A DNA stretch of 64,000 bases from positions 62,001 through 126,000 of IMG/VR virus record IMGVR_UViG_3300031521_001337; one strand, given 5' to 3'. Below are positions 1,392-50,813 of the stretch, in pieces (position 1 is the first letter of the stretch; the number at the start of each line of letters is the position of its first letter). Made by a program: the position numbers and the translations under genes. The notes beneath the pieces were generated by a model. That model was not told the origin of the DNA. It ran no database searches and saw only the letters and a program-made list of their open reading frames with translations.

Positions 1392-1701
1392 TCAAATAGC
1401 AATATTTGAAGAAGCTAAAGCTAGGTATTTAATCTATCAGAATGCTTTGAATTTCTGTAGTATGTGTTGGAGTTTGAATATCACTCTTAAAGATAAGGGT
1501 TATAAATCCTCAATTTTTGAGATAGATGATTTTCTTCCAACATTTACTTATGAAAACGTGTGTAAATTAGCATCACAGTATAATTTCGAAGAACCTAAGT
1601 GTCAGTTAATAACTATCACTTATTGGTGGGATGTACATAATGCTAAACCACGTATTAGTGCTTTTGATGCATTAGTGAATCAATTAAAAAGAGGGATATA
1701 G
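1375..1701 (+). CDS. hypothetical protein
   Basis: 108 aa ORF in the co-oriented gene run. Confidence 0.65.
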   Translation: MIPVNDQIAIFEEAKARYLIYQNALNFCSMCWSLNITLKDKGYKSSIFEIDDFLPTFTYENVCKLASQYNFEEPKCQLITITYWWDVHNAKPRISAFDALVNQLKRGI

Positions 1702-1752
1702 CTCAGCCGAAAAGAGCCTAGGGTCGGGAGTTTGAATCTCTCTATCCCTCCA
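1691..1752 (+). ncRNA. tRNA-like RNA lacking the anticodon arm
   Basis: Acceptor (G)AGGGATA/TATCCCT(C), D-arm GCTC-AGCCGAAAA-GAGC, only CTA then GGGTC variable loop, T-arm GGGAG-TTTGAAT-CTCTC. Confidence 0.75.
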
Positions 1753-1855
1753 TTTCATTTTGTTTTTGATTCCAATCCGTAGAAATACGGTGCGGAACAA
1801 AAATAATTAAAAAACACATAGATAAAGATGAAAAAAATATTAAAGAGCGTAATAC

Positions 1856-3929: not shown

Positions 3930-4949
3930 ATGCCAATTATTCAAAATAATAAAGTCTATACTATAGGCAATATTACTGGTTCTCACGATAAATTACCCGT
4001 TGGTAATTATGCCTTACAATTTAATGAAAGTAATGAACAATTTTTCCTTACTCAACAAATTGATTTTAAATTACCTTCAAAACTTTATGGTGATTTCAAC
4101 TTTATTGATCGTTGGATTAAATCTTACGAACACAATAGTGCTAAAAATCTTGGTATTTTATTATCTGGTACAAAAGGAACAGGTAAAACAGTAGCTGCTC
4201 AGTTATTCTGTCAAAGAATGAACAAACCTGTTATTTTTATCACTGAAGCATACAATGGTCCCGGTTTTGAAGCATTCATTTCTGATCCACACTTTTCTGA
4301 TTCTATTATCTTTATTGATGAATTTGAGAAAGTATATCGTCGTGATGAAGAATCAAATTCATTATTGACATTAATGGATGGTATGTATCATACTAAATTG
4401 ATTTTCTTATTAACTGCAAACGATCCTTCTTCAATTAATAACAAATTGAAAAATCGTTTGAATCGTGTTAAATATCACAAAATTTACAGTAAACTTGATG
4501 CCGCTACAGTTGCTGAAATTGTTGATGATTTACTTAAAAAACCTGCATATCGTGATTCAGTTGACAAATTTGTTGAAACTGTTGATATGTTGACAATGGA
4601 TGTACTTACATCTATTATCCGGGAAGTAAATTTATTTGATGAATCTGCTCTTGAATGCGCCAAGTTCCTTAACTTGACCGCTGAACCTGAATATTTCAAT
4701 ATTACAGTTACTTATAAAGGAACTGATTATAAATGTGATGGTCAATTTGTAAATTATCGTAAGAACCCTGTAATTATTGCATATTATCAATCTGGTTATC
4801 CAAAAGAATTGACAAAATTATTGCCGGATTATACCAGTGTTAAATTATTCGAACGACCATATTCTATTATTGATGGTGTGGTTGTTTGTAAATATGCTGA
4901 AGGTGTTGAAATTAAACTTTCAAAAAGTTCTTACGCATTATCATTCTAA
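3930..4949 (+). CDS. AAA+ ATPase
   Basis: Walker A GTKGTGKT, Walker B IIFIDEFEK, LLTAN sensor, NRLNR arginine finger. Confidence 0.9.
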   Translation: MPIIQNNKVYTIGNITGSHDKLPVGNYALQFNESNEQFFLTQQIDFKLPSKLYGDFNFIDRWIKSYEHNSAKNLGILLSGTKGTGKTVAAQLFCQRMNKPVIFITEAYNGPGFEAFISDPHFSDSIIFIDEFEKVYRRDEESNSLLTLMDGMYHTKLIFLLTANDPSSINNKLKNRLNRVKYHKIYSKLDAATVAEIVDDLLKKPAYRDSVDKFVETVDMLTMDVLTSIIREVNLFDESALECAKFLNLTAEPEYFNITVTYKGTDYKCDGQFVNYRKNPVIIAYYQSGYPKELTKLLPDYTSVKLFERPYSIIDGVVVCKYAEGVEIKLSKSSYALSF

Positions 4950-4968
4950 AAAATCAAAACAAAAAAAG

Positions 4969-6138
4969 ATGACTATTCAAGAAAAAGTAGCAGAAAAAAT
5001 TGCTGGAAGTAACGATACTATCTCAGCCGCAGTAATAGACAAAATGGCTAATACTGAAATTAACAAACGTGTTGATATTTTGTTTAAATCAATTGAAAAA
5101 CAAGATGCTGCTAAAGCCGCATTAAGTAAAATCAATTATGATGATATTACTGAATATGTTGATGGCGAGCCAAAGACTAAAATGTCAGAAGCTCGTTATA
5201 AAGAAATCAAAAAAGCTAAAGAAAGTTTGGAAAAACTTACTAAAGCTATTGAAATTGCTTTAGCAGCTAACACAGCTGACTCGTACAACAAACTTGCGGA
5301 AGCATCAAAGTAGTATGAAACTGGCGACTTTACAACGAAAAGTAGATGCTATCGTTAAAAAATCGTCACAAGAAATAATTGTGGGCGTCTATCTGAAAAT
5401 GATAGATGCTCACAATGAATTTTGCGACTGTGATTATTGTGAATTGTTGAAAAAATACGTTAAAGCAAAAATATACATATGTAAAATTAAACGTCAGTAT
5501 TATTGGGGTGATGGAGAATCCCAAGATCTTTGGGATAATATTCAACGTCATAAAGAATTAATCAAGACGTTAAAATTACAAAAGGATACACTTAAATTAA
5601 AACTTCATTAAAATGAAAATGGGAACAATTATTACAATTATTTTAGCAGTTGCAGCATTAGTATTAATGTCTGAATTAAAAATATCATTTAAACCTTTTA
5701 GTGTTTCTGCACCAAACTGGTTAAATGTAATCGGATGGATAGTACTTTCTATTGCACTAGCTATTTTAGGTGTTAATGAGAATCTTAAAGGATATAAAGA
5801 AGGTTACAAAAAAGGTTCCGATGATACTATTGAACTTGTAAAACAAGTAAATAAAGAGAAACCTATTGAAACTATTACCATATCCAAAGAACATGAGTAA
5901 AGAAATTATATTACTCGAAGGTGTAGCAACAGCTAGTACTGTTGGACCTTATAGTCTAGAAGATAGAGATCGTATGAATTGGATAACTAAAGCTGGTAAA
6001 AAAGTTAAAGTTCCTGATTTAGACGATAAACACGTTAGTAACATTATTGCAGCAATGCAACGTGGTGATATTAAATGTGATAAAAGTCTTCAAGATTTTT
6101 TTGAATTAGAATTAGCACATAGAGAGAACAACCGATAG
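4969..6138 (+). CDS. four hypothetical proteins (4969..5313, 5315..5611, 5613..5900 membrane, 5893..6138)
   Basis: Tightly packed ORFs; starts adjusted to the first ATG after the upstream stop. Confidence 0.6.
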
Positions 6139-6159: not shown

Positions 6160-6566
<407 letters not shown>

Positions 6567-6581
6567 TTAAATTGAAATTAA

Positions 6582-6950
6582 ATGGAAATAGTAGAAAATT
6601 TTAAGATGAAAGTTAGTAATCCTGATCAAATAAAAACTGTTCAGAGAATATTAAGTAGTATGGGTTTATTAGAGAAATTTTTATCTTCATTTTATTATGA
6701 AGGAATTTGTTATAGATATCATTCAAAACAAATGACTGGTTTTGGAAATACTAATGTACATTTTGATGATCATGAGCATAAAGAAATTACTTATGATGAA
6801 TTTATTGAAAAATATGATATTTTTAATGTTTCAACTAAAAATGTTATAATTACTACTGATATCATGTTTAAATTCATTGAATATTACATGGATCACCTTA
6901 ATGATGAAAAAACGCCACAAGAACTATTTAAAGATTGGAAAAATGATTGA
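6582..6950 (+). CDS. paralog array 1, member 1
   Basis: ENFKM...VQRIL...EITYDEF.EKY...FIEYYMDHLNDE. Confidence 0.8.
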   Translation: MEIVENFKMKVSNPDQIKTVQRILSSMGLLEKFLSSFYYEGICYRYHSKQMTGFGNTNVHFDDHEHKEITYDEFIEKYDIFNVSTKNVIITTDIMFKFIEYYMDHLNDEKTPQELFKDWKND

Positions 6951-7338
6951 AAGTTTTAAAATTAAAATTGCAGATGAAAGAGAACATAAAATAGTTCAAG
7001 AAACTTTGTTTTCTAATGGAGCTAAATGGAGAGAAGGTCAAGAAACAGTTTTATTTGGACCTAATCCAAATATAAATTGGAATGGACTTGAATATAATTC
7101 TGTAACTAAAAAAATTGGAGGATTTACTGATATAACTTCTACATCATCGTTTAATAGACATGATAAAAATGAAATATCATTTGCAGATTTTTGTAGTAAA
7201 TATGTAACTGACTCTATTCATTCAGAAAAAAATAAATATGTTTTGTTTGTACAATATTGTATGAACCATTTAAATGATGAAAAAACATTTGAAGAATTAT
7301 ATGATGAATATATATTAAATCTGAAAAATGATAAATGA
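6943..7338 (+). CDS. paralog array 1, member 2
   Basis: MIESFKI...VQETLFSNGAKW...EISFADF...YCMNHLNDE; ATG at 6943. Confidence 0.8.
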   Translation: MIESFKIKIADEREHKIVQETLFSNGAKWREGQETVLFGPNPNINWNGLEYNSVTKKIGGFTDITSTSSFNRHDKNEISFADFCSKYVTDSIHSEKNKYVLFVQYCMNHLNDEKTFEELYDEYILNLKNDK

Positions 7339-7720
7339 GAATTTTAAAATAAGAGTAAATAATCCAGAAGAGTCCATATTTGTTCAAAAACTATTATTTC
7401 AAAATGGTTCAAAATGGAGAAATGGTAAATCAGAAGTTAATCTTGTTGATAGCCAAGGTAGTTCGTGGAAAGGGTTATATCATTATTTAAATAATACTAT
7501 AACTGGTGATGCAACTATTGGAGGATATTTTCATAATCATGATAATCCTGAAATAACATTAGAAGAATTTAAAATTAGATATTTTGGTAAAGGTGAAACA
7601 AGTAGACAAACTTGTATTGATTTTGCTAAATATTGTATGGATCATTTAAATGATGAATTAACAATAGAACAATTATTTGATAACTTTATAAAACCAAAAA
7701 ATGGAAATAAAACCTTTTAA
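7328..7720 (+). CDS. paralog array 1, member 3
   Basis: ENFKI...VQKLLFQNGSKW...EITLEEF...YCMDHLNDE. Confidence 0.8.
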   Translation: MINENFKIRVNNPEESIFVQKLLFQNGSKWRNGKSEVNLVDSQGSSWKGLYHYLNNTITGDATIGGYFHNHDNPEITLEEFKIRYFGKGETSRQTCIDFAKYCMDHLNDELTIEQLFDNFIKPKNGNKTF

Positions 7721-8072: not shown

Positions 8073-8437
8073 TAATCGAAAATTTTAAAATACATCATCT
8101 TACTAGGGATCAATTTAAATTTGTTCAAGAAATAATATTTAAAAATAATTGTTCATGGGTAGGATCACACACAACTAACATTAAAGAACATTCAGATAGT
8201 AATGATATTTCTATTGTAGTAAATAATCTTGAGGCGAGATCTGGATCAGATATTGTACAAGGTATATTTGATCAACTTAGAGGAGAAGAAATTACTTTTG
8301 AACAATTTAAAGAATTATATTTTATTAATATTCCTAAATTTACTAAACAACAAATGTTTGATTTTGCGGAATTTTATGCAAATAATTCAGACACAATATT
8401 AAATGATGAATTGCTAAAACAATTTTTAAATCCATAA
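8069..8437 (+). CDS. paralog array 1, member 5
   Basis: ENFKI...VQEIIFKNNCSW...EITFEQF...FAEFY. Confidence 0.8.
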   Translation: MIIENFKIHHLTRDQFKFVQEIIFKNNCSWVGSHTTNIKEHSDSNDISIVVNNLEARSGSDIVQGIFDQLRGEEITFEQFKELYFINIPKFTKQQMFDFAEFYANNSDTILNDELLKQFLNP

Positions 8438-9336
8438 TGAACGAAACTCAAACAGAAATTGGAGTTGTTATCGGGAGATTTCAGCTACACGAATTGCATA
8501 CTGAACATATCAAGTTAATTGAACATGTTCTTGCAAACCACGAAAAGGTAATTTTATTCTTAGGAACTACATCTGCAATGGGTACTCAAAGAAATCCATT
8601 GGATTTTATTACCCGTAAAGCTATGATCGAAGCACATTTTAGAAATAGAATATCTTCAATTGTACCACTTGCTGATTGTAAATCCAATGAAGTATGGTCT
8701 ACTCAAATTCGTACTAAAGTAAGAGATATTTTTCCATCTGGAACAGTTACTCTTTATGGAGGTAAAGATTCGTTTATTCCATATTATACTGGAAATTGGA
8801 AAACAACTGAACTTGAACCAGAAGTCTATATATCTGCAACAGATATTAGAAAGAAAGTTGCCGGACGTATATTAGCATCATCTGATTTCAGAGCTGGTAT
8901 AATTTATTCGGTTTTTTCACAATATCCCCGCTCATTTTCAACAGTTGATGTTGCAATCTTTAATGAAAAAGGTGAAATTCTATTAGGTCAAAAACCTGAT
9001 GAAAAAGAATGGTGTTTTGTTGGAGGATTTGTTGATGTTACTGATGAATCCGATGAAGCTGCTGCTCGTCGTGAAGGTAGAGAAGAAACAGGTCTTGAAC
9101 TTGCTGACTTTGAATTCGTTTGTTCAAAACGTGTAGAAGATTGGCGATATAAGAATTCACATGATGCTAAAATTATGACGCATTTATACAAATGTAAATA
9201 TACTTTTGGTAGTCCACAACCTCAAGATGATATTGCTGCCTTAAAATGGTTCCCATACGGTCCTGAGCTAGACAAAATCTTGGTTGGAGAACATAAAAAG
9301 TTATTAGTTGACTTATTAAAAAATACTGAAAAATGA
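8437..9336 (+). CDS. bifunctional NMN adenylyltransferase / Nudix ADP-ribose pyrophosphatase (NadM-Nudix)
   Basis: GRFQ...H..H nucleotidyltransferase motif, RNPLDF..R, ISATDIR; Nudix box GGFVD...AAARREGREETGL. Confidence 0.92.
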   Translation: MNETQTEIGVVIGRFQLHELHTEHIKLIEHVLANHEKVILFLGTTSAMGTQRNPLDFITRKAMIEAHFRNRISSIVPLADCKSNEVWSTQIRTKVRDIFPSGTVTLYGGKDSFIPYYTGNWKTTELEPEVYISATDIRKKVAGRILASSDFRAGIIYSVFSQYPRSFSTVDVAIFNEKGEILLGQKPDEKEWCFVGGFVDVTDESDEAAARREGREETGLELADFEFVCSKRVEDWRYKNSHDAKIMTHLYKCKYTFGSPQPQDDIAALKWFPYGPELDKILVGEHKKLLVDLLKNTEK

Positions 9337-9799: not shown

Positions 9800-10246
9800 A
9801 TGGTAATTAAAGCTCCAAATAATATAAATCAACGAGATATACATAAACCTTCTATGTTTTTAGCAGGTAGTATTGAAATGGGTCAAGCTGAAAATTGGCA
9901 AGATACTATGACAAAATATTTTGAAAAAGATTTTAATATATTTAATCCTCGTAGAGATAATTGGGATAGTTCTTGGGTTCAATCTTTTGATAATCCTGAA
10001 TTTTTTCAACAAGTTTCTTGGGAATTACACGCATTAGATTTTTCTGATATAATTATTATGTATTTTGATCCTAAAACTATGTCTCCAATTAGTTTATTAG
10101 AATTAGGTTTATATGCAACTTCTAAAAAGTTACATGTAATTTGTCCTGAAGGATTTTGGAGAAAAGGTAATATAGAAATTGTATGTTCTAAATATAATAT
10201 TCCTTTATACAATAGTATTGAAGAATTTAAAAATAAATTTAAATAA
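9800..10246 (+). CDS. nucleoside 2-deoxyribosyltransferase-like protein
   Basis: FLAGSIEMG..NWQ, FNPRR..W, QVSWE..AL..SD, SPISLLELG, GN..IVC motifs. Confidence 0.85.
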   Translation: MVIKAPNNINQRDIHKPSMFLAGSIEMGQAENWQDTMTKYFEKDFNIFNPRRDNWDSSWVQSFDNPEFFQQVSWELHALDFSDIIIMYFDPKTMSPISLLELGLYATSKKLHVICPEGFWRKGNIEIVCSKYNIPLYNSIEEFKNKFK

Positions 10247-11677
10247 ATGCCAAAATTTCATCCAACAACCGCAACTGATGCATATAAATTTGTGCATTGG
10301 ACGCAACGTCCTTCGGGATTGACAAGACTTATGTCTTATGGAGAACCTCGTGTAGGAGGTCAACACTCTCATATTGTTTTCTATGGTATACAATATTTCA
10401 TAAAAGAATATTTTATGACTGTTGTCACTAATGAAGATATTGAACGTGGTGCTCGTAGAAGTTTAAATACTTTTGGTAACCCTGGTTATTTCCCTCAAGA
10501 AATTTGGGAAAAAGTTCGCGATTTAGGATATTATCCTTTAGAAATCAAAGCTGTAAAAGAAGGAACTGTTGTTCCAACTGGTAATGTTTGTTATACAATT
10601 GAAGCTACTGAAGAGTGGTTTGCACCAATGGTTAGTCACTTCGAACCTTGGTTAATGTGGAATTGGTATCCAGTTGCCGTTGCTACTCGTATGTATAATA
10701 TTCATAAAGGTATTACTCCATCATTCAAAATCTCTACTAACAACGCTATGTTGGATTATGTAGTTAATGATTTTGGATTAAGAGGTGCTCAAGGTCATGA
10801 AGCTGCTTGTTTAGGTGGTTCTGCTGCTTTAATCTTTTCTGATGGTTCTGATAATGTTCCAGCAATGGAATTTATTGAAGACTATTACGGAGATGCAACC
10901 GTAGGAAAATCTGTATGGGCAACTGAACACTCAGTAGCAACTGTATTTGGTCCTGGTCAGGGAGAATTTGATTATGTCAATGCTCAATTTGATCGCGCTG
11001 GTGACGATGCTATGGTATCAATTGTTATTGATTCTTATGATGATACTAATTTCATTAAAAATGTTATTGGTTCAGAAGCAATCAAACAACGTATTATCGC
11101 ACGTCCAGGTAGAACTATTTTACGTCCGGATTCTGGTGTTCCGTTAACAAATATGATTAAGTATTCTGAAATGCTTGGTAATATTTTTGGATATCACTTA
11201 AATGAAGTAGATTACAGAGTAATTAATCATAATGTAGGCTTAATTCAAGGAGATGGTATGAATGAAAATTCAATCGTTGATATTTATTCAGAATACATTA
11301 AAACTGGTTGGTCTTGTGAAAACTTTGCGGTTGGTTCAGGTGGTGGTTTGCTTGTTGAAGGATTGACCAGAGATACAGATCGTTGGGCAGTAAAATGCTG
11401 TTTCGCTGTAATTGATGGAGAATCAAAAGATATTCGTAAATCTCCTAAAGGAGATATGACTAAAGCTTCAAAAGCTGGTATTTTGAAACTTCATAAAGCC
11501 GGATCAGAATTCATTACTATCGAAAGTTCTAAAGAACAATATGGTATTAATAATGGATATGCTGATGAACTTGAAATAGTTTATCGTAATGGTAAATTAA
11601 TGAGAGATCAACATTGGACAGAAATTCGCACTATTGCTAAGAGTTATCTTGAAGCCGATTTAAAAACAAGTAAATAA
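10247..11677 (+). CDS. nadV: nicotinamide phosphoribosyltransferase (NAMPT)
   Basis: TDAYK.H, DFGLRG, ATEHSV, VIDSYD, RPDSG, IQGDG, GSGGGLL, RDT motifs. Confidence 0.95.
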   Translation: MPKFHPTTATDAYKFVHWTQRPSGLTRLMSYGEPRVGGQHSHIVFYGIQYFIKEYFMTVVTNEDIERGARRSLNTFGNPGYFPQEIWEKVRDLGYYPLEIKAVKEGTVVPTGNVCYTIEATEEWFAPMVSHFEPWLMWNWYPVAVATRMYNIHKGITPSFKISTNNAMLDYVVNDFGLRGAQGHEAACLGGSAALIFSDGSDNVPAMEFIEDYYGDATVGKSVWATEHSVATVFGPGQGEFDYVNAQFDRAGDDAMVSIVIDSYDDTNFIKNVIGSEAIKQRIIARPGRTILRPDSGVPLTNMIKYSEMLGNIFGYHLNEVDYRVINHNVGLIQGDGMNENSIVDIYSEYIKTGWSCENFAVGSGGGLLVEGLTRDTDRWAVKCCFAVIDGESKDIRKSPKGDMTKASKAGILKLHKAGSEFITIESSKEQYGINNGYADELEIVYRNGKLMRDQHWTEIRTIAKSYLEADLKTSK

Positions 11678-11726: not shown

Positions 11727-11954
11727 ATGTTTATAACATTTTTAATCTGGTATTTTATCGGAGTAATATTATCAATATTCATGTTATCATTTGTTAATGA
11801 TTTGTGTGATCATGATTATGAAAAATGTGAAGTTGCCTGGGCTTTCATGAGTTGGATTGTTGTAATTTTTAGTATTTATTACATTATTACAATATCAAAA
11901 ATATTTAAATGGAAACCAAGTTTAAAAAACTTATGGAAAAAGAAAAAGCAGTAA
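11727..11954 (+). CDS. small membrane protein
   Basis: Two hydrophobic segments. Confidence 0.6.
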   Translation: MFITFLIWYFIGVILSIFMLSFVNDLCDHDYEKCEVAWAFMSWIVVIFSIYYIITISKIFKWKPSLKNLWKKKKQ

Positions 11955-12409
11955 TCTTTGATTTAGATCTTACTACTTTGTATCATACTAACAGAAGTCC
12001 TTTTGATTGGAGTGATTTATCAGGTGACGTGCTTATTAAAAGTGTTGGTGAACTAATGCAATCACTAGCTATGCAAGGATATATGATTTTACTTGTTACA
12101 GGGAGACCTGAACGAGTAAGACCTCAAACCGAAGCATGGTTAATTGAAAAACTAGAAGACGGAGGACTTCTGTATGATGATGAATATAAATTATTCATGA
12201 AACAAGGTATAGACTATACTAAATCATATTTATCGAAAGAAGCTACTTTAAAGAAGCTTCAAGAAGAGTATGACATTCTTATGGCATTTGATGATGATAA
12301 TCGTTGTGCTGAGATGTATGTAAGAAATGGTATTATAACAATGATGCCAATGAACTATAAAGTTCCACCAAAAAAAGTTCAACAAGAACTAGAATTCCCT
12401 AAAGAATAG
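11909..12409 (+). CDS. HAD-superfamily phosphatase, polynucleotide kinase 3'-phosphatase-like
   Basis: IFDLDLT motif I, LVTGRP motif II, K, AFDDD motif IV. Confidence 0.8.
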   Translation: METKFKKLMEKEKAVIFDLDLTTLYHTNRSPFDWSDLSGDVLIKSVGELMQSLAMQGYMILLVTGRPERVRPQTEAWLIEKLEDGGLLYDDEYKLFMKQGIDYTKSYLSKEATLKKLQEEYDILMAFDDDNRCAEMYVRNGIITMMPMNYKVPPKKVQQELEFPKE

Positions 12410-14583: not shown

Positions 14584-14655
14584 GTTCGGGTCTTATAGCG
14601 GCTAGTAATCTGGGTTTTCATCCCAGCAAGCGGGGTTCGATTCCCCGTCCGAATA
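14584..14655 (+). tRNA. tRNA-Glu(TTC)
   Basis: Cloverleaf; CTGGG-TTTTCAT-CCCAG. Confidence 0.9.
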
Positions 14656-16039: not shown

Positions 16040-16525
16040 AACTAGGTTTATTTATTATTAGCTACGATAGAATAAACCATCAAAGATGGGGTTGTAGTCT
16101 TAACTTATAAAGTTATTGCCCATACCAATTAACAAAACTAACTAGGGTCGAGCTACATTTTGCCACTGTTAGTATTAGACTTAGAGATCAGAGGTAGCCG
16201 TGACTACTCTAAGTTGAACAAATAAAATCTCTTTAATTGAAGCAAAACGGTAACCAGGGGGAGACACCCAACCCAATAAGGGGTAAGGACGAAAGTTGAG
16301 TACGTAGGTTATAAACCATAGCAGTGGTTGAATGTTTTGGTAAATGTAGTTATGATATGGTTAGTGTTCGCAGAAAAGCCTTCGTTATGACCTAAGTCAA
16401 TATAATTATTCCACTCTGCTTAAAGTGAATAAAGAGATTTTTTATGCCTACTTATACCCTCAAGCTTATATCTTGTTGAAAGGTTATTTGGTGACAGCCT
16501 GGTTCAATCCCAGGAGTAGGTACAA
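16040..16525 (+). ncRNA. candidate large ornate ncRNA (~480 nt)
   Basis: Several long-range helices of 9-12 bp, some crossing; ends in a T-arm-like hairpin CCTGG-TTCAATC-CCAGG. Confidence 0.55.
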
Positions 16526-16526
16526 T

Positions 16527-17006
16527 ATGGAAAGAAGTAAAAATGAATTATTAGCAATTGAAAAAGGATATAAAATAACTATAAATGGTGATATTTTAAA
16601 TCCTAAAGAAAAAATTTTAACAGGAACTATTTATAATAAAAATTATAAAAAATTTAATATTAGATTAAATGAAAAACATATTCCAGTTAAAGTACATAGA
16701 TTACAAGCATATCAAAAATTTGGAGAAATTATTTTTAACGAAGATATAGTAGTTAGACATTTAGATGGTAACGGATTAAATAATTCTTGGGATAATATTG
16801 AAATTGGATCATATAGTGATAATATGATGGATAAACCTAAAGAAGAAAGAATTAGAATTGCATCTAATGCTAATAAAAAATATTCTGATGAATTAGTTTT
16901 AGAAATTAAAGCATACCGAAATTTAGGGCATACTTATAAAGAAATTATGGAAAAATATAATATTAGTAGTAAAGGAACCATTAGTAATATTATTAATAAT
17001 AGATAA
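16527..17006 (+). CDS. HNH homing endonuclease with C-terminal HTH
   Basis: KVHRL.AY...VVRHLDGNGLNN..DNIEIGSYSDN; ATG at 16527 preferred over GTG 16425, which overlaps structured RNA. Confidence 0.85.
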   Translation: MERSKNELLAIEKGYKITINGDILNPKEKILTGTIYNKNYKKFNIRLNEKHIPVKVHRLQAYQKFGEIIFNEDIVVRHLDGNGLNNSWDNIEIGSYSDNMMDKPKEERIRIASNANKKYSDELVLEIKAYRNLGHTYKEIMEKYNISSKGTISNIINNR

Positions 17007-19874: not shown

Positions 19875-20618
19875 ATGGAAAACAAATATTCAAAAGAAAA
19901 TTTAGAAAAAATTGTAAAAGAAAGTTATTCTTTTGCAGATGTGTGTAGATATTATGGGTTGCCTTTAACTGCTGGTAATTATGAAACAATTCAAACTAAG
20001 ATAAAAAAACATCAAATTAGCACAATTCATTTTAAAAGAAATTCTTCAAATGAAACTAAGAATGTGTACACTTTAGATACAATCTTTTGTAAAGATTCAG
20101 CATATACACAAACAAGTAAGTTAAGAGATAAATTATTAAAAAATAATCTAAAAGAACATAAATGTGAATGTTGTGATAATACTAAATGAATGGGAGAACC
20201 TATTCCATTAGAAACACACCACATAGATGGTATTAAAACTAATAATGAATTAAATAATCTTAAATTATTATGTCCAAACTGTCATGCTTTTACTGATAAT
20301 TATAAAGGTAAAAATGTTAAAGATAAAGTTATAGATGCATTATATTGTAATTCTTGTGGTAATACTATAACAAGTTCTTCTGTAAGTGGTTTATGTTTAA
20401 GTTGTTCTGCTAAACGAATAGCTAATGATTTTTACGATGAACTTGGTATAACTCGTGAATATTTAAAAACTTTAGTTCGCACAGAAACATTTATTAATAT
20501 TGGTAAATTATACAATAGATCAGATAATGCTATTAGAAAATGGTGTAAACATTTTAATATACCTTCTTCAAAGAAAGAAATAAATAGTTTGTCTGATGAT
20601 GAATGGGATAAAATATAA
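19875..20618 (+). CDS. HNH homing endonuclease with one in-frame TGA (20187..20189)
   Basis: ORFs 19839..20189 and 20190..20618 are one frame: CECCDNTK*MGEPIPLETHHIDG...N...NLKLLCPNCH. Confidence 0.8.
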
Positions 20619-20861: not shown

Positions 20862-20950
20862 GGGGGTGTGGCGAAATTGGTAGCCGCAGCTAAATATAGG
20901 TTAGACCATAGCGGTCGTGAGACATGGGGGTTCGAAGCCCTCCGCCCCCA
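20862..20950 (+). ncRNA. tRNA-Leu-like RNA with a distorted, 7-nt-expanded anticodon arm
   Basis: Leu-type acceptor, D, variable and T arms; anticodon region GCTA-AATATAGGTTAGACCA-TAGC. Confidence 0.7.
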
Positions 20951-20956
20951 CTAAAT

Positions 20957-21035
20957 TCCCCAATGGCGTAATTGGCAGACGCGTATTCTTCGGAATATGT
21001 CGAGAGACATGTGGGTTCGAGTCCTCCTTGGGGGA
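20957..21035 (+). ncRNA. class II tRNA-like RNA with a UUCG tetraloop in place of the anticodon loop
   Basis: TATTC-TTCG-GAATA; D-arm GCG..CGC; variable arm GTC-GAGA-GAC; acceptor TCCCCAA/TTGGGGG. Confidence 0.7.
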
Positions 21036-21041
21036 GCAAAT

Positions 21042-21122
21042 ATGTCAGTATACAAGCGGTTAAAGTAGTTAGTCTCCAAAACTAATCCGAAAGGTTCGTG
21101 GGTTCAAATCCTACCTGATGTG
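21042..21122 (+). tRNA. tRNA-Trp(CCA) with long variable arm
   Basis: TTAGT-CTCCAAA-ACTAA; variable arm CC-GAAA-GG; G73. Confidence 0.85.
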
Positions 21123-21127
21123 CAAAT

Positions 21128-21210
21128 GCTTGAGTGGCGAAATGGTTAATACGCGTATGCCTTAGGAGCATATGTCGAAAGATGTGTCGGTTCGAGTCCG
21201 ACCTCGAGTA
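21128..21210 (+). tRNA. tRNA-Leu(TAG)
   Basis: TATGC-CTTAGGA-GCATA; class II. Confidence 0.95.
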
Positions 21211-21230
21211 CAAATATAAAAATAGATAAA

Positions 21231-22061: not shown

Positions 22062-23006
22062 ATGAAGATATTATTTATTGGTAATGGAATTTTTGGAGTT
22101 CCAGCATTAAAAAAATTACATGAAATTTATCAAGTTACAGTTATAACAACACCACCACGACGTTTCGGTAGAGTAGTACAAAATACACCTATTTATATTG
22201 CTGGTAAAGCTTTAGGTTGTTTAGTATATACTGCTAATGATATTAATGAACTTGAACATCGTATAATTAGTACTGATTTTGATTTAATTGTTGTTGCATC
22301 TTATGGACAAATAATTAAAATGAAAATACTTGATTCTGCTAAATATGGTGCAATTAATATTCATGGTTCATTATTACCGAAGTATAGAGGTGCTTCTTGT
22401 ATTCAAGCTGCTATTTTGAATAGAGATTCTGAAACAGGAGTTACATTTATTAAAATGAATGCTGCTGTAGATGCTGGAAGTATTATTACTCAACGTAAAA
22501 TGTATCTACCTGTAGGAATGGGATATATTATGCTTCTTGATCAATTATCAAACTTAGCTGCTGAAAATATTCTTCTAACAATCACTAAATATACTCGTGG
22601 AGTTATTTTAAGACCACAGATAGAAAGTGAAGCTACATATTGTTGTAAAATAACTAAAGATGATTGTTTACTTGATTTTAATAAAAATGTTGATGATGTA
22701 TATGCAAAAATGAAGGCATATGAATCGAATCACGGAGTATTCTTTTATTTACCAGATAACAATACTGAAGTTAAAATTAAAGATGCATGTATGTATACTG
22801 GACGTGTTAAAGGTGATTTCTTAGATGGAGAATTAATTTGTGTTGAAAATAATAAACTTTTTATAAATTGTAATAAAAGTAGTCTTCAGATTGTTTCATT
22901 ACAATTACCTAATAAAAAGGTTATGTCAGCTAGAGATTTTATTAATGGTCATAAGAAGTTAATCACACAATTTGCTGATTTACAAATAATTGTACATAAT
23001 GTATGA
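22062..23006 (+). CDS. fmt: methionyl-tRNA formyltransferase
   Basis: KILFIG...FG..AL..L, TTP.RR.GR, VASYG.I, INIHGSLLPKYRGA..IQ, ETGVT, VDAG.I; ~314 aa. Confidence 0.92.
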   Translation: MKILFIGNGIFGVPALKKLHEIYQVTVITTPPRRFGRVVQNTPIYIAGKALGCLVYTANDINELEHRIISTDFDLIVVASYGQIIKMKILDSAKYGAINIHGSLLPKYRGASCIQAAILNRDSETGVTFIKMNAAVDAGSIITQRKMYLPVGMGYIMLLDQLSNLAAENILLTITKYTRGVILRPQIESEATYCCKITKDDCLLDFNKNVDDVYAKMKAYESNHGVFFYLPDNNTEVKIKDACMYTGRVKGDFLDGELICVENNKLFINCNKSSLQIVSLQLPNKKVMSARDFINGHKKLITQFADLQIIVHNV

Positions 23007-49779: not shown

Positions 49780-49799
49780 TGACTTAAACAATTAATACT

Positions 49800-50813
49800 A
49801 TGTACGAATTAGATATAGCACCAAAGATAACTAAAGAACTTTTACTCACAAAATACTCCCAAGAAACGTTCATGGAACATTACTTGGGAGTATCTATTAA
49901 AAAAGGACTATTCAAGAGTCCACCCACTTTGAGGGTTGATCATACACCAACATGTAGCTTTTATAAGGATAAAAAAGGTACTCTATTTTTTAAAGACTTT
50001 GCTGGACCAAGTTTCGACTTTCTCGGCGCAGTAATGCATATTTTTCAATGTAATTATTATAAAGCTTTAAGAATTATTGCTAATGATTTTGGAATTATAA
50101 AAGTAGATAATATGCAAATGAATCCTCCACTTATACCATATTCAGGTTCAATCTTACAGGAAACTGAAAAGGCGAACATTCAAGTTGAAGTCAAGGACTT
50201 TAGCCGAAAAGAATTGGATTGGTGGAATTCATTTGGTGTATCAATCGTAACCCTTAAAAAGTATAAGGTGTTTTCTATAAAATCTGTTTTCTTAAATGGA
50301 GTTTATTTTTCATCTTCTACAGAATCTTGTCCTATTTATGGATATTATGGTGGAAATACTTCAGATGGTGATGAGTTGTGGCGATTATATATGCCAACTA
50401 AAAGAAACTATAGGTTTCTTAGCAATTGGAAATCAACGATGATTCAAGGTGCCAAACAACTATCAAAATCTGGAGATTTCATTGTAATAACTAAATCACT
50501 TAAAGACGTAATGGCTTTAGATGAATTTGGTATAACAGCAGTAGCCCCTAATAGTGAAAATATATTCTTAACTCAAGCTCAGTATGAAAAATTACAGCTT
50601 AAATTTAAAGATATTTATTTGTTATACGATAGGGATCTACCGGGTGTTAAAGCTGCCAATAAAATTAGGAAAGCCTTTCCAGGTGTAAAAGTACTCTTAG
50701 TTCCAAAAGTAAAAGACTTTACTGATTATGTCAAAAAGTATGGAACATTAAAAACATTTAATTTAATAGAAGAATGGCTAGAAAAAAGAAAGACGAATCT
50801 ACCACTTGAGTAG
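49800..50813 (+). CDS. DNA primase (TOPRIM)
   Basis: D..P.CSFY, FKDF, IQG, ITKS.KD, YDRD..G, KDFTDY. Confidence 0.8.
   Translation: MYELDIAPKITKELLLTKYSQETFMEHYLGVSIKKGLFKSPPTLRVDHTPTCSFYKDKKGTLFFKDFAGPSFDFLGAVMHIFQCNYYKALRIIANDFGIIKVDNMQMNPPLIPYSGSILQETEKANIQVEVKDFSRKELDWWNSFGVSIVTLKKYKVFSIKSVFLNGVYFSSSTESCPIYGYYGGNTSDGDELWRLYMPTKRNYRFLSNWKSTMIQGAKQLSKSGDFIVITKSLKDVMALDEFGITAVAPNSENIFLTQAQYEKLQLKFKDIYLLYDRDLPGVKAANKIRKAFPGVKVLLVPKVKDFTDYVKKYGTLKTFNLIEEWLEKRKTNLPLE

Follow-up and report, generated by a model that had tools for sequence, protein, structure and literature searches.

A mini-tRNA without an anticodon arm in a peat phage and its possible role as a tRNA-like processing module

The MALAT1 mascRNA is a tRNA-like handle for RNase P and RNase Z that defines the ends of the neighboring RNAs. 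Other non-decoding tRNA-like folds, the t-elements of plant mitochondria (PMC1920247) and Haloferax (PMC4946936), are found within longer transcripts, where they act as handles for the same two enzymes and define the ends of adjacent RNAs, as do the viral tRNA-like RNAs (TMERs) of murine gammaherpesvirus 68 (MHV68), which have a tRNA-like 5' part followed by hairpins (PMC4337559). Here, we describe an anticodon-arm-less tRNA-like gene (mini-tRNA) found in a giant phage, in a stretch of 64,000 nucleotides (the window) taken from a viral contig of 213 kb that comes from peat metagenomes (IMG/VR record IMGVR_UViG_3300031521_001337, positions 62001-126000). It shares with all of these RNAs a non-decoding tRNA-like fold, which would also lie within a longer transcript, and with the TMERs the combination of a tRNA-like part and a downstream hairpin. 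Whereas t-elements, mascRNA and TMERs keep some anticodon stem, the arm of the mini-tRNA is gone or, in a relative, reduced to 3 bp and a tetraloop; the gene belongs to an operon of a DNA phage, and both its embedding in a transcript and its processing are what we infer.

Other described RNAs resemble it in part. The tRNA-like domain of transfer-messenger RNA (tmRNA) also has an acceptor and a T arm and no anticodon arm, but the mini-tRNA stands free, is about 60 nt long and possesses a complete D arm of 4 bp and neither an mRNA-like part nor pseudoknots. No Rfam or ARAGORN tmRNA match was found at the site, and the pair here is G3:C70 instead of G3:U70, so the alanine identity pair of tmRNA is lacking. 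YrlA RNAs have a permuted topology, end in a Ro-binding stem and are linked to the Rsr/Ro protein. The tRNA-like module of YrlA (PMC4201824) resembles the mini-tRNA in that it imitates the T arm, D arm and acceptor of a tRNA and does not decode; however, there was no Rfam match to YrlA or Y RNA at the mini-tRNA up to E = 10, the ends of the RNA pair as an acceptor stem, and no Ro-type family appeared among the neighboring open reading frames (ORFs) scanned. The irregular G-1 tRNAs (PMC5389517) have in common with it the peat or soil habitat, the G-1-type acceptor and a non-translational nature, although they keep the anticodon arm and are found in polycistrons near toxin-antitoxin genes. Finally, the tRNA-Tyr of phage T5 rescues translation from retron effectors (PMC11555353) and, like the mini-tRNA, such anti-defense tRNAs are phage tRNA-type genes in the accessory region of a tRNA-rich phage. 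They act, however, by means of an intact, cleavage-resistant anticodon loop and by decoding, and the mini-tRNA has no anticodon loop.

The gene reads GAGGGATA-TA-GCTC-AGCCGAAAA-GAGC-CTAGGGTC-GGGAG-TTTGAAT-CTCTC-TATCCCTC-CA (segments in Table 1). It has the 7-bp acceptor stem and discriminator of a canonical tRNA (AGGGATA/TATCCCT plus C), topped by an additional G:C pair, as well as the D arm, the T arm, the T-loop consensus and the 19:56 elbow pair; only the anticodon arm (5-bp stem, 7-nt loop) is absent, here and in its most diverged variant, L015. An 8-bp acceptor, a D stem and a T arm with 3 nt in the place of the 17-nt anticodon arm had been proposed in the initial annotation of this DNA and are borne out by the sequence, the fold and Rfam. 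The three-helix junction is the minimum-free-energy fold, with an energy z-score of only -0.9. The Rfam tRNA model (RF00005) matches 1692-1750 with 35.3 bits (E = 1.5e-6; gathering score, 29) when the short stretch 1680-1765 is searched, and the alignment places 3 nt where the model has 18 positions, essentially the anticodon arm. The searches of the whole window and of 600 nt passed over the gene on account of their filters; ARAGORN made no call there when the window was scanned. By a structural descriptor, it is the sole convincing anticodon-arm-less tRNA in the 64 kb, and 100 dinucleotide shuffles gave 0.19 matches on average.

Four further details in the initial annotation also hold: the G-1:C73-like pair that extends the 7-bp stem (seen in each of the four variants compared), the elbow shared with other tRNAs of the phage, the encoded C74 and the remoteness from the tRNA island. 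As for the elbow, U56 in the T loop is combined with G-A instead of G-G in the D loop, as in the Thr, Gly and Asp tRNAs of the phage, and every C56 tRNA read in this phage has G-G in the D loop; thus, the mini-tRNA follows the elbow covariation of working tRNAs. The Tyr tRNA has U56 too, and its D loop is not clearly readable. At the 3' end, the phage tRNAs encode N73-C74 and no full CCA, and so does the mini-tRNA. The 24 tRNA genes of the window are at 14.5 to 26.8 kb, the closest one starting at 14584, 12.8 kb away. The two acceptor strands resemble a Shine-Dalgarno (AAGAGGG) and an anti-Shine-Dalgarno (CCCUCC) sequence, more weakly in L015, a likeness that a purine-rich stem probably produces by chance.

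The neighboring ORFs allowed us to find four independent variants from other samples (Table 1). The deletion is not a recent one, and three close relatives have the same mini-tRNA. The most informative one, L015, reads GAGGGGTA-TA-GCTC-AGTGGATA-GAGC-G-TTC-GTAA-GAA-AGGTC-GGGAG-TTTGAGT-CTCCC-TACTTCTC-CA and scores 44 bits with the Rfam tRNA model in a local search, having also been missed by the larger, filtered ones. In place of the anticodon arm it has three base pairs closed by a GNRA tetraloop, a capped stub and not an anticodon loop. Stem pairs were counted by script from verified segments, since MAFFT had misaligned the L015 D arm. Between the window and L015 there are five substitutions in the stems and all five preserve pairing (one A:U to G:C double change, two G:C to G:U and one G:U to G:C), while the D loop, the T loop and the linker vary freely and the flanking ORFs have diverged to 67-79% DNA identity. 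This combination of paired changes in the stems, free loops and diverged flanks argues for selection on structure and against a decaying pseudogene, and since the L015 lineage is also arm-reduced, the loss of the anticodon must predate the split of the lineages. The initial annotation named an intact tRNA at this site in related phages as a finding that would refute its view, and none was found in any relative inspected. The original idea of a non-decoding mimic of the tRNA elbow and acceptor, rather than a product of random decay, gains support from a diverged relative that shares the arm-less state with compensatory and wobble changes in the stems. From these comparisons of sequences, we consider it very probable that the mini-tRNA is a selectively maintained, non-decoding tRNA-like RNA.

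The distribution of the element is narrow. In distant relatives (recognized by a Band_7 protein with 79-63% identity or by remote homologs, 49-35%, of the 108-amino-acid [aa] ORF upstream of the mini-tRNA), there was no mini-tRNA, hairpin or tRNA at the site, and the module is therefore an accessory insertion in a variable region. Megablast found no close relative in the INPHARED phage collection, blastn of the element produced only short T-arm matches to tRNA-Pro, and scans of viral contigs anchored on two neighboring proteins recovered the same phage only. L015 itself is a mosaic, with a Band_7 protein (6481-7353) 96% identical to that of the window and ORFs 1-2 kb upstream (4868-5191) at 44-72%.

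The mini-tRNA is followed, 14 nt to the 3' side, by a long irregular hairpin with the core TTCC-AAT-CCGTA-GAAA-TACGG-TGC-GGAA (1770-1797). A block of 33 nt (1764-1796) is identical in all four variants except for one loop base, GAAA or GTAA, both of them GNRA, and the lower A-U stem shows a change from G-U to G-C in L015. Folded together, mini-tRNA and hairpin have a z-score of -3.4 in the window and -2.3 in L015. The hairpin has no Rfam match and is present as a single copy in the window, and hence it is not a repeated promoter or terminator. Scanning viral and metagenome contigs with it retrieved the same phage, plus four chance matches. A further candidate homolog, L264, which shares GTAGAAATAC, had no supporting structure or Rfam match and was taken as a chance match. 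As judged from the alignments, the contrast between a hairpin invariant in sequence and a mini-tRNA conserved in structure suggests that the hairpin may have a sequence-specific partner.

Genes of this kind are not restricted to this phage. A pattern that fixed only the common D arm, a linker of up to 14 nt, GGTC and the start of the T loop, leaving free the 3' strand of the T stem and the acceptor stem, matched at least 114 loci in viral contigs. At least 98 of them are intact (98 of the 114 among the matches listed, 86%; the other counts for the viral class also refer to these matches), having at least 4/5 T-stem and at least 6/7 acceptor pairs, and the acceptor criterion alone would be reached by chance in about 1%. 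ARAGORN calls only one of the 98, and the Rfam tRNA model gives many of them 41-50 bits. Most are solitary, without another tRNA in the fetched locus (64/98), and 18/98 are within 500 nt of a tRNA. Their linkers range from 2 to 14 nt, and 29 of the 35 long ones fold into hairpins with 3 bp or more and a loop of 3-5 nt; the tetraloop stubs are GNRA in 6 of 17 cases versus an expected 3% or so. There is no common acceptor identity. Clustering of the neighbors revealed no recurring specific partner gene, just lineage-specific families and the terminase, which is the only neighbor common to different mini-tRNA families, and the lack of a recurring partner protein points to host tRNA enzymes as the partners. 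The carriers include cultured phages of three lineages, in which the gene is unannotated or labeled as a 60-nt "tRNA" (Table 1). In the Bacteroides phage family (15 contigs), the mini-tRNA is 96% identical versus 69% and 82% for the 250-nt flanks, and it is located between two covarying hairpins. Flanking hairpins are modestly enriched over the class, a count inflated by one family, and retention of the CCA as a mark of a functional 3' end gave mixed results. Because the members are unannotated or labeled as ordinary tRNAs, the class is probably large and overlooked. Phage tRNA-like genes without an anticodon arm were not described in the literature searched (full text), an absence that refers to that library only; tRNA mimicry and tRNA-like processing handles are already known, and it is the widespread, free-standing arm-less phage form that was not found described.

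The same pattern detected about 40 genuine cases in bacterial genomes and metagenome-assembled genomes, including one genome with a tandem array. This is Phaeodactylibacter xiamenensis KD52 (Bacteroidota; locus L216, 1028-1302), with three tandem matches ~115 nt apart, two of which passed the stem test as arm-less, with the stub linker GCCCGTACGGGA; loci L148 and L161 have two copies each. Many apparent bacterial cases with an "NN" linker (such as L258, L228 and L244) turned out to be ordinary CCA-ending tRNAs in which a masked stretch had seemingly been collapsed, and they were excluded. One viral contig (L128) carries an abiF RNA motif (RF03085; 39.9 bits; 1866-1903) 4 nt upstream of its arm-less gene (1908-1964).

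The mini-tRNA begins 11 nt before the end of the 108-aa ORF. The window, L017 and L025 have the stop codon of this ORF within the mini-tRNA, whereas in L015 it is 5 nt upstream. The next ORF (115 aa) starts about 100 nt past the mini-tRNA on the same strand, with a predicted AAGAG ribosome-binding site ~8 nt before it, and no intrinsic terminator was found by scanning the interval between the two. The position of the stop codon and the lack of a predicted terminator suggest that the mini-tRNA is embedded in an operon transcript, and as no space is left for a separate promoter, it would be cotranscribed with the 108-aa ORF. The acceptor stem, T arm and D arm with the elbow make up the substrate of RNase P, RNase Z and the CCA-adding enzyme, three enzymes that work on the top half of tRNAs. 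This half, including the 19:56 elbow pair, is what the mini-tRNA has kept, and what has been removed is the part needed only for decoding. From its structure, conservation and operon context, along with the existence of the wider class, we infer a possible route of transcription and cleavage and a selected outcome. Our preferred reading, still a tentative one, is that it is a tRNA-like processing module that cuts the operon mRNA, releases a stable mimic and leaves behind the conserved hairpin. The nascent operon RNA would fold into the tRNA-like L shape and be cut on the 5' side of the mini-tRNA by the host RNase P and on the 3' side by RNase Z, the latter because neither the phage tRNAs nor the mini-tRNA have an encoded CCA. 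The cuts would punctuate the mRNA and free a stable mini-tRNA of ~60 nt, open to CCA tailing, and the downstream RNA would retain the hairpin in its 5' region. Removal or capping of the anticodon arm would keep the handle out of translation, which could explain why the arm has been lost repeatedly.

Several observations weigh against this processing module. If RNase P acted in the window lineage, it would strip the 108-aa ORF of its stop codon, which looks costly, and a simple processing signal would need no invariant hairpin sequence. Across the class, the downstream hairpin is not a general feature by fold z-scores, some members are found within tRNA clusters, where such a signal would be redundant, and the CCA is often missing in members beside CCA-encoding tRNAs. 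In L025, T54 has become A and the acceptor contains a G:A mismatch, and the module is accessory, not core, being wholly missing from more distant relatives. As for expression, the runs listed for the 127-nt element included no RNA run; the wastewater runs marked "RNA?" correspond to contigs of an L017-like variant, with flat depth, and were mostly judged to be probably DNA, so they say nothing about transcripts. Phage tRNA genes are usually read as codon-usage helpers or, lately, as replacements for tRNAs cut by defense systems, and a conserved non-decoding gene suggests that the tRNA fold has yet another use, either as a handle for the tRNA-processing enzymes of the host or as a mimic of the top half. 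Such a class would affect tRNA counts in phage annotation and could reveal a general way in which phages cut and stabilize operon RNAs or interfere with tRNA-binding host factors. The cultured Bacteroides, Vibrio and Alteromonas carriers make experiments possible.

Alternatively, the released mini-tRNA might itself be the selected product, as a decoy, a sink or an uncleavable competitive inhibitor of something that reads the acceptor end or the elbow, e.g., CCA-end-modifying toxins (toxSAS or MenT/AbiEii type), acceptor-stem nucleases, RelA, EF-Tu or a synthetase. This possibility fits the retention of the whole elbow and acceptor, with the covarying 19:56 pair, as well as the location in a hypervariable accessory region of one lineage, often the case for counter-defense genes, and the investment of the phage in tRNA functions (24 tRNAs, a tmRNA, an Fmt-like enzyme and a Pnkp-type phosphatase). 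The phage also has a second non-decoding gene, capped by UUCG (Table 1), some class members occur in tRNA clusters with an encoded CCA, and phage tRNAs are known to counter tRNA-cleaving defenses (PMC11555353). However, nothing observed here points to the decoy or sink roles that the initial annotation had proposed, and the operon position, the parts kept and the invariant hairpin downstream fit a substrate of tRNA end-processing at least as well. No target is linked to the gene, with no defense or counter-defense gene adjoining it and no signal nearby in the PADLOC, Pfam and PHROG scans of the neighbors. Furthermore, most known anti-phage tRNases attack the anticodon loop, which is missing here, a stoichiometric enzyme decoy needs very high expression and the invariant hairpin is left unexplained; we see this role as rather unlikely. 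A broader version seems equally doubtful to us, namely, that phages of many lineages and some bacteria encode free, arm-less tRNA mimics that would work as inhibitors or sinks of tRNA-directed defense enzymes and acceptor-end toxins, or as aminoacyl carriers, the arm (often a tetraloop-capped stub) having apparently been lost many times independently; the mini-tRNA, its invariant partner hairpin and the UUCG-capped gene would all be members. Histidine minihelices are substrates of histidyl-tRNA synthetase (HisRS), and an 8-bp acceptor with G-1:C73 resembles tRNA-His. A chargeable non-decoding carrier of the His type, feeding a non-ribosomal aminoacyl transfer or titrating the synthetase, would account for the G-1:C73-like pair of all four variants, and there are precedents both for irregular G-1 tRNAs that are charged by HisRS and unused in translation, in peat and forest soils (PMC5389517), and for a tRNA-dependent phage enzyme, Mom (PMC13219725). 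Still, we find it very unlikely, given that the tRNA-His of the phage has A73 and not C73, that no transferase gene is adjacent, that no acceptor identity is shared by the class, and that four sequences have little power to call the extra pair selected.

The mini-tRNA could also have no function and be a decaying tRNA pseudogene, originated by slippage, e.g., between CTAG/TTAG repeats in the anticodon stem, an origin suggested when it is compared with tRNA-Arg(ACG) genes that have the same T arm. Indeed, the same 22-nt sequence of variable loop and T arm is found in normal tRNAs (Arg, Arg and Val) of other phages, and some bacterial cases look like plain deletions of known tRNAs, such as a Gly-GCC derivative. 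The two structure-weakening changes of L025, the absence of the element in distant relatives and an overall identity of the mini-tRNA between lineages (70-81%) that does not exceed that of the flanking ORFs also keep this explanation alive. Nevertheless, it is improbable in view of the five pairing-preserving substitutions accompanied by changing loops, an arm-less state older than the split and GNRA-capped in L015, a hairpin core unchanged between the window and L015, and a class in which 86% are intact and one family has a mini-tRNA far more conserved than its flanks. A structure controlling transcription or translation (a branched terminator, an attenuator or a 5' untranslated element of the downstream gene) would be in keeping with a module placed between two ORFs and with the U-rich run (TTTCATTTTGTTTTTG) after the acceptor stem in all variants; but this run is the 5' strand of the second hairpin, the terminator scan was empty, and a terminator has no need of the T-loop sequence, the D arm or the 19:56 covariation, so that we regard it as extremely unlikely.

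Table 1. Features of the window, the variants, the cultured carriers and a relative. Positions are those of the window unless another contig is named.
Feature	Position	Strand	Evidence or remarks
Mini-tRNA (anticodon-arm-less tRNA-like gene)	1691-1752	+	Sequence, fold, Rfam tRNA, stem table, descriptor scan
Mini-tRNA, acceptor stem	1691-1698/1743-1750	+	8/8 pairs, including the G-1:C73-like pair
Mini-tRNA, U8-A9	1699-1700	+	
Mini-tRNA, D stem	1701-1704/1714-1717	+	GCTC/GAGC, 4/4 pairs
Mini-tRNA, D loop	1705-1713	+	AGCCGAAAA
Mini-tRNA, linker and variable region	1718-1725	+	CTAGGGTC
Mini-tRNA, T stem	1726-1730/1738-1742	+	GGGAG/CTCTC, 5/5 pairs, one G-U
Mini-tRNA, T loop	1731-1737	+	TTTGAAT
Mini-tRNA, 3' CA	1751-1752	+	
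Long irregular hairpin	1760-1806	+	Alignments, folds
Upstream ORF, 108 aa	1375-1701	+	Orphan family; TAG stop (1699-1701) inside the mini-tRNA
Downstream ORF, 115 aa	1856-2203	+	GTG start; ATG at the same place in L015
Phage-encoded tmRNA	6160-6566	+	Rfam, 107 bits; predicted tag GNKTISFARTAFMAAA
NUDIX protein	8437-9336		
Nucleoside 2-deoxyribosyltransferase-like protein	9800-10246		
NAPRT/NAMPT	10247-11677		
Pnkp-type HAD phosphatase	11909-12409		RNA-repair type
HNH endonuclease genes	16425-17006, 20190-20618		Among the tRNA genes
Class II-type tRNA-like gene	20956-21037	+	ARAGORN "tRNA-???"; anticodon stem UAUUC/GAAUA capped by a UUCG tetraloop
Fmt-like methionyl-tRNA formyltransferase	22062-23006		Inside the tRNA island
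Variant L017/L018			108-aa ORF 94% identical; same mini-tRNA with one D-loop change
Variant L025			115-aa downstream ORF 90% identical; T54 to A and G:A mismatch in the acceptor stem
Variant L015/L016			108-aa ORF 73% identical; 3-bp stem and GTAA loop in place of the anticodon arm
Bacteroides phage BF1-TP2 (PQ571263, about 67152-67226)			Mini-tRNA unannotated
Alteromonas N4-like phage PT15-A5 (OP481051, about 49783-49845)			Mini-tRNA unannotated
Vibrio phage K476 group (K476: OZ195911, 141592-141651)			Mini-tRNA annotated as a 60-nt "tRNA" within a tRNA cluster; ACCA encoded
tRNA-type genes of L266	1211-1286, 2968-3042, 3065-3138 (L266)		

The window has a G+C content of 30% and its genes are all on one strand; the phage DNA polymerase reaches at most about 34% identity to that of any deposited phage. 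The 108-aa ORF had no Pfam, PHROG or PADLOC match and was considered as a possible partner protein of the mini-tRNA. This was discarded, since it is an orphan family whose distant homologs have no mini-tRNA after them, and thus the ORF and the mini-tRNA are not one unit. Its AlphaFold model was unusable (pLDDT 49), and the look-alikes found in the Atlas, among them an anticodon-binding domain (TM about 0.5), depend on a model of low confidence and are leads only. The phage tmRNA is 4.4 kb downstream of the mini-tRNA, and a cut by RNase P at the latter would make the mRNA of the 108-aa ORF non-stop. The Fmt-like enzyme, the Pnkp-type phosphatase, NAPRT/NAMPT, the NUDIX protein and the deoxyribosyltransferase-like protein suggest an investment in translation and NAD salvage.

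With a UUCG tetraloop instead of the 7-nt anticodon loop, the class II-type gene is another tRNA mimic of this phage that does not decode, the second one after the mini-tRNA. It belongs to an array (20862-21211) of four tRNA-like genes with long variable arms, separated by 4 nt, only two of which are called by Rfam at the gathering score. Also in this array are a "Tyr(AUA)" whose anticodon loop is abnormal and a tRNA with a CCA anticodon and a long variable arm. In a 99-kb relative (L266), whose Band_7 protein is 63% identical, there are three tRNA-type genes about 2-4 kb upstream of the Band_7 gene: one tRNA-like, whose anticodon loop has an unusual length of 8 nt, a normal tRNA-Arg(TCT) and, next to the latter, another tRNA-like with a 4-nt loop (TCAC) on the anticodon stem.

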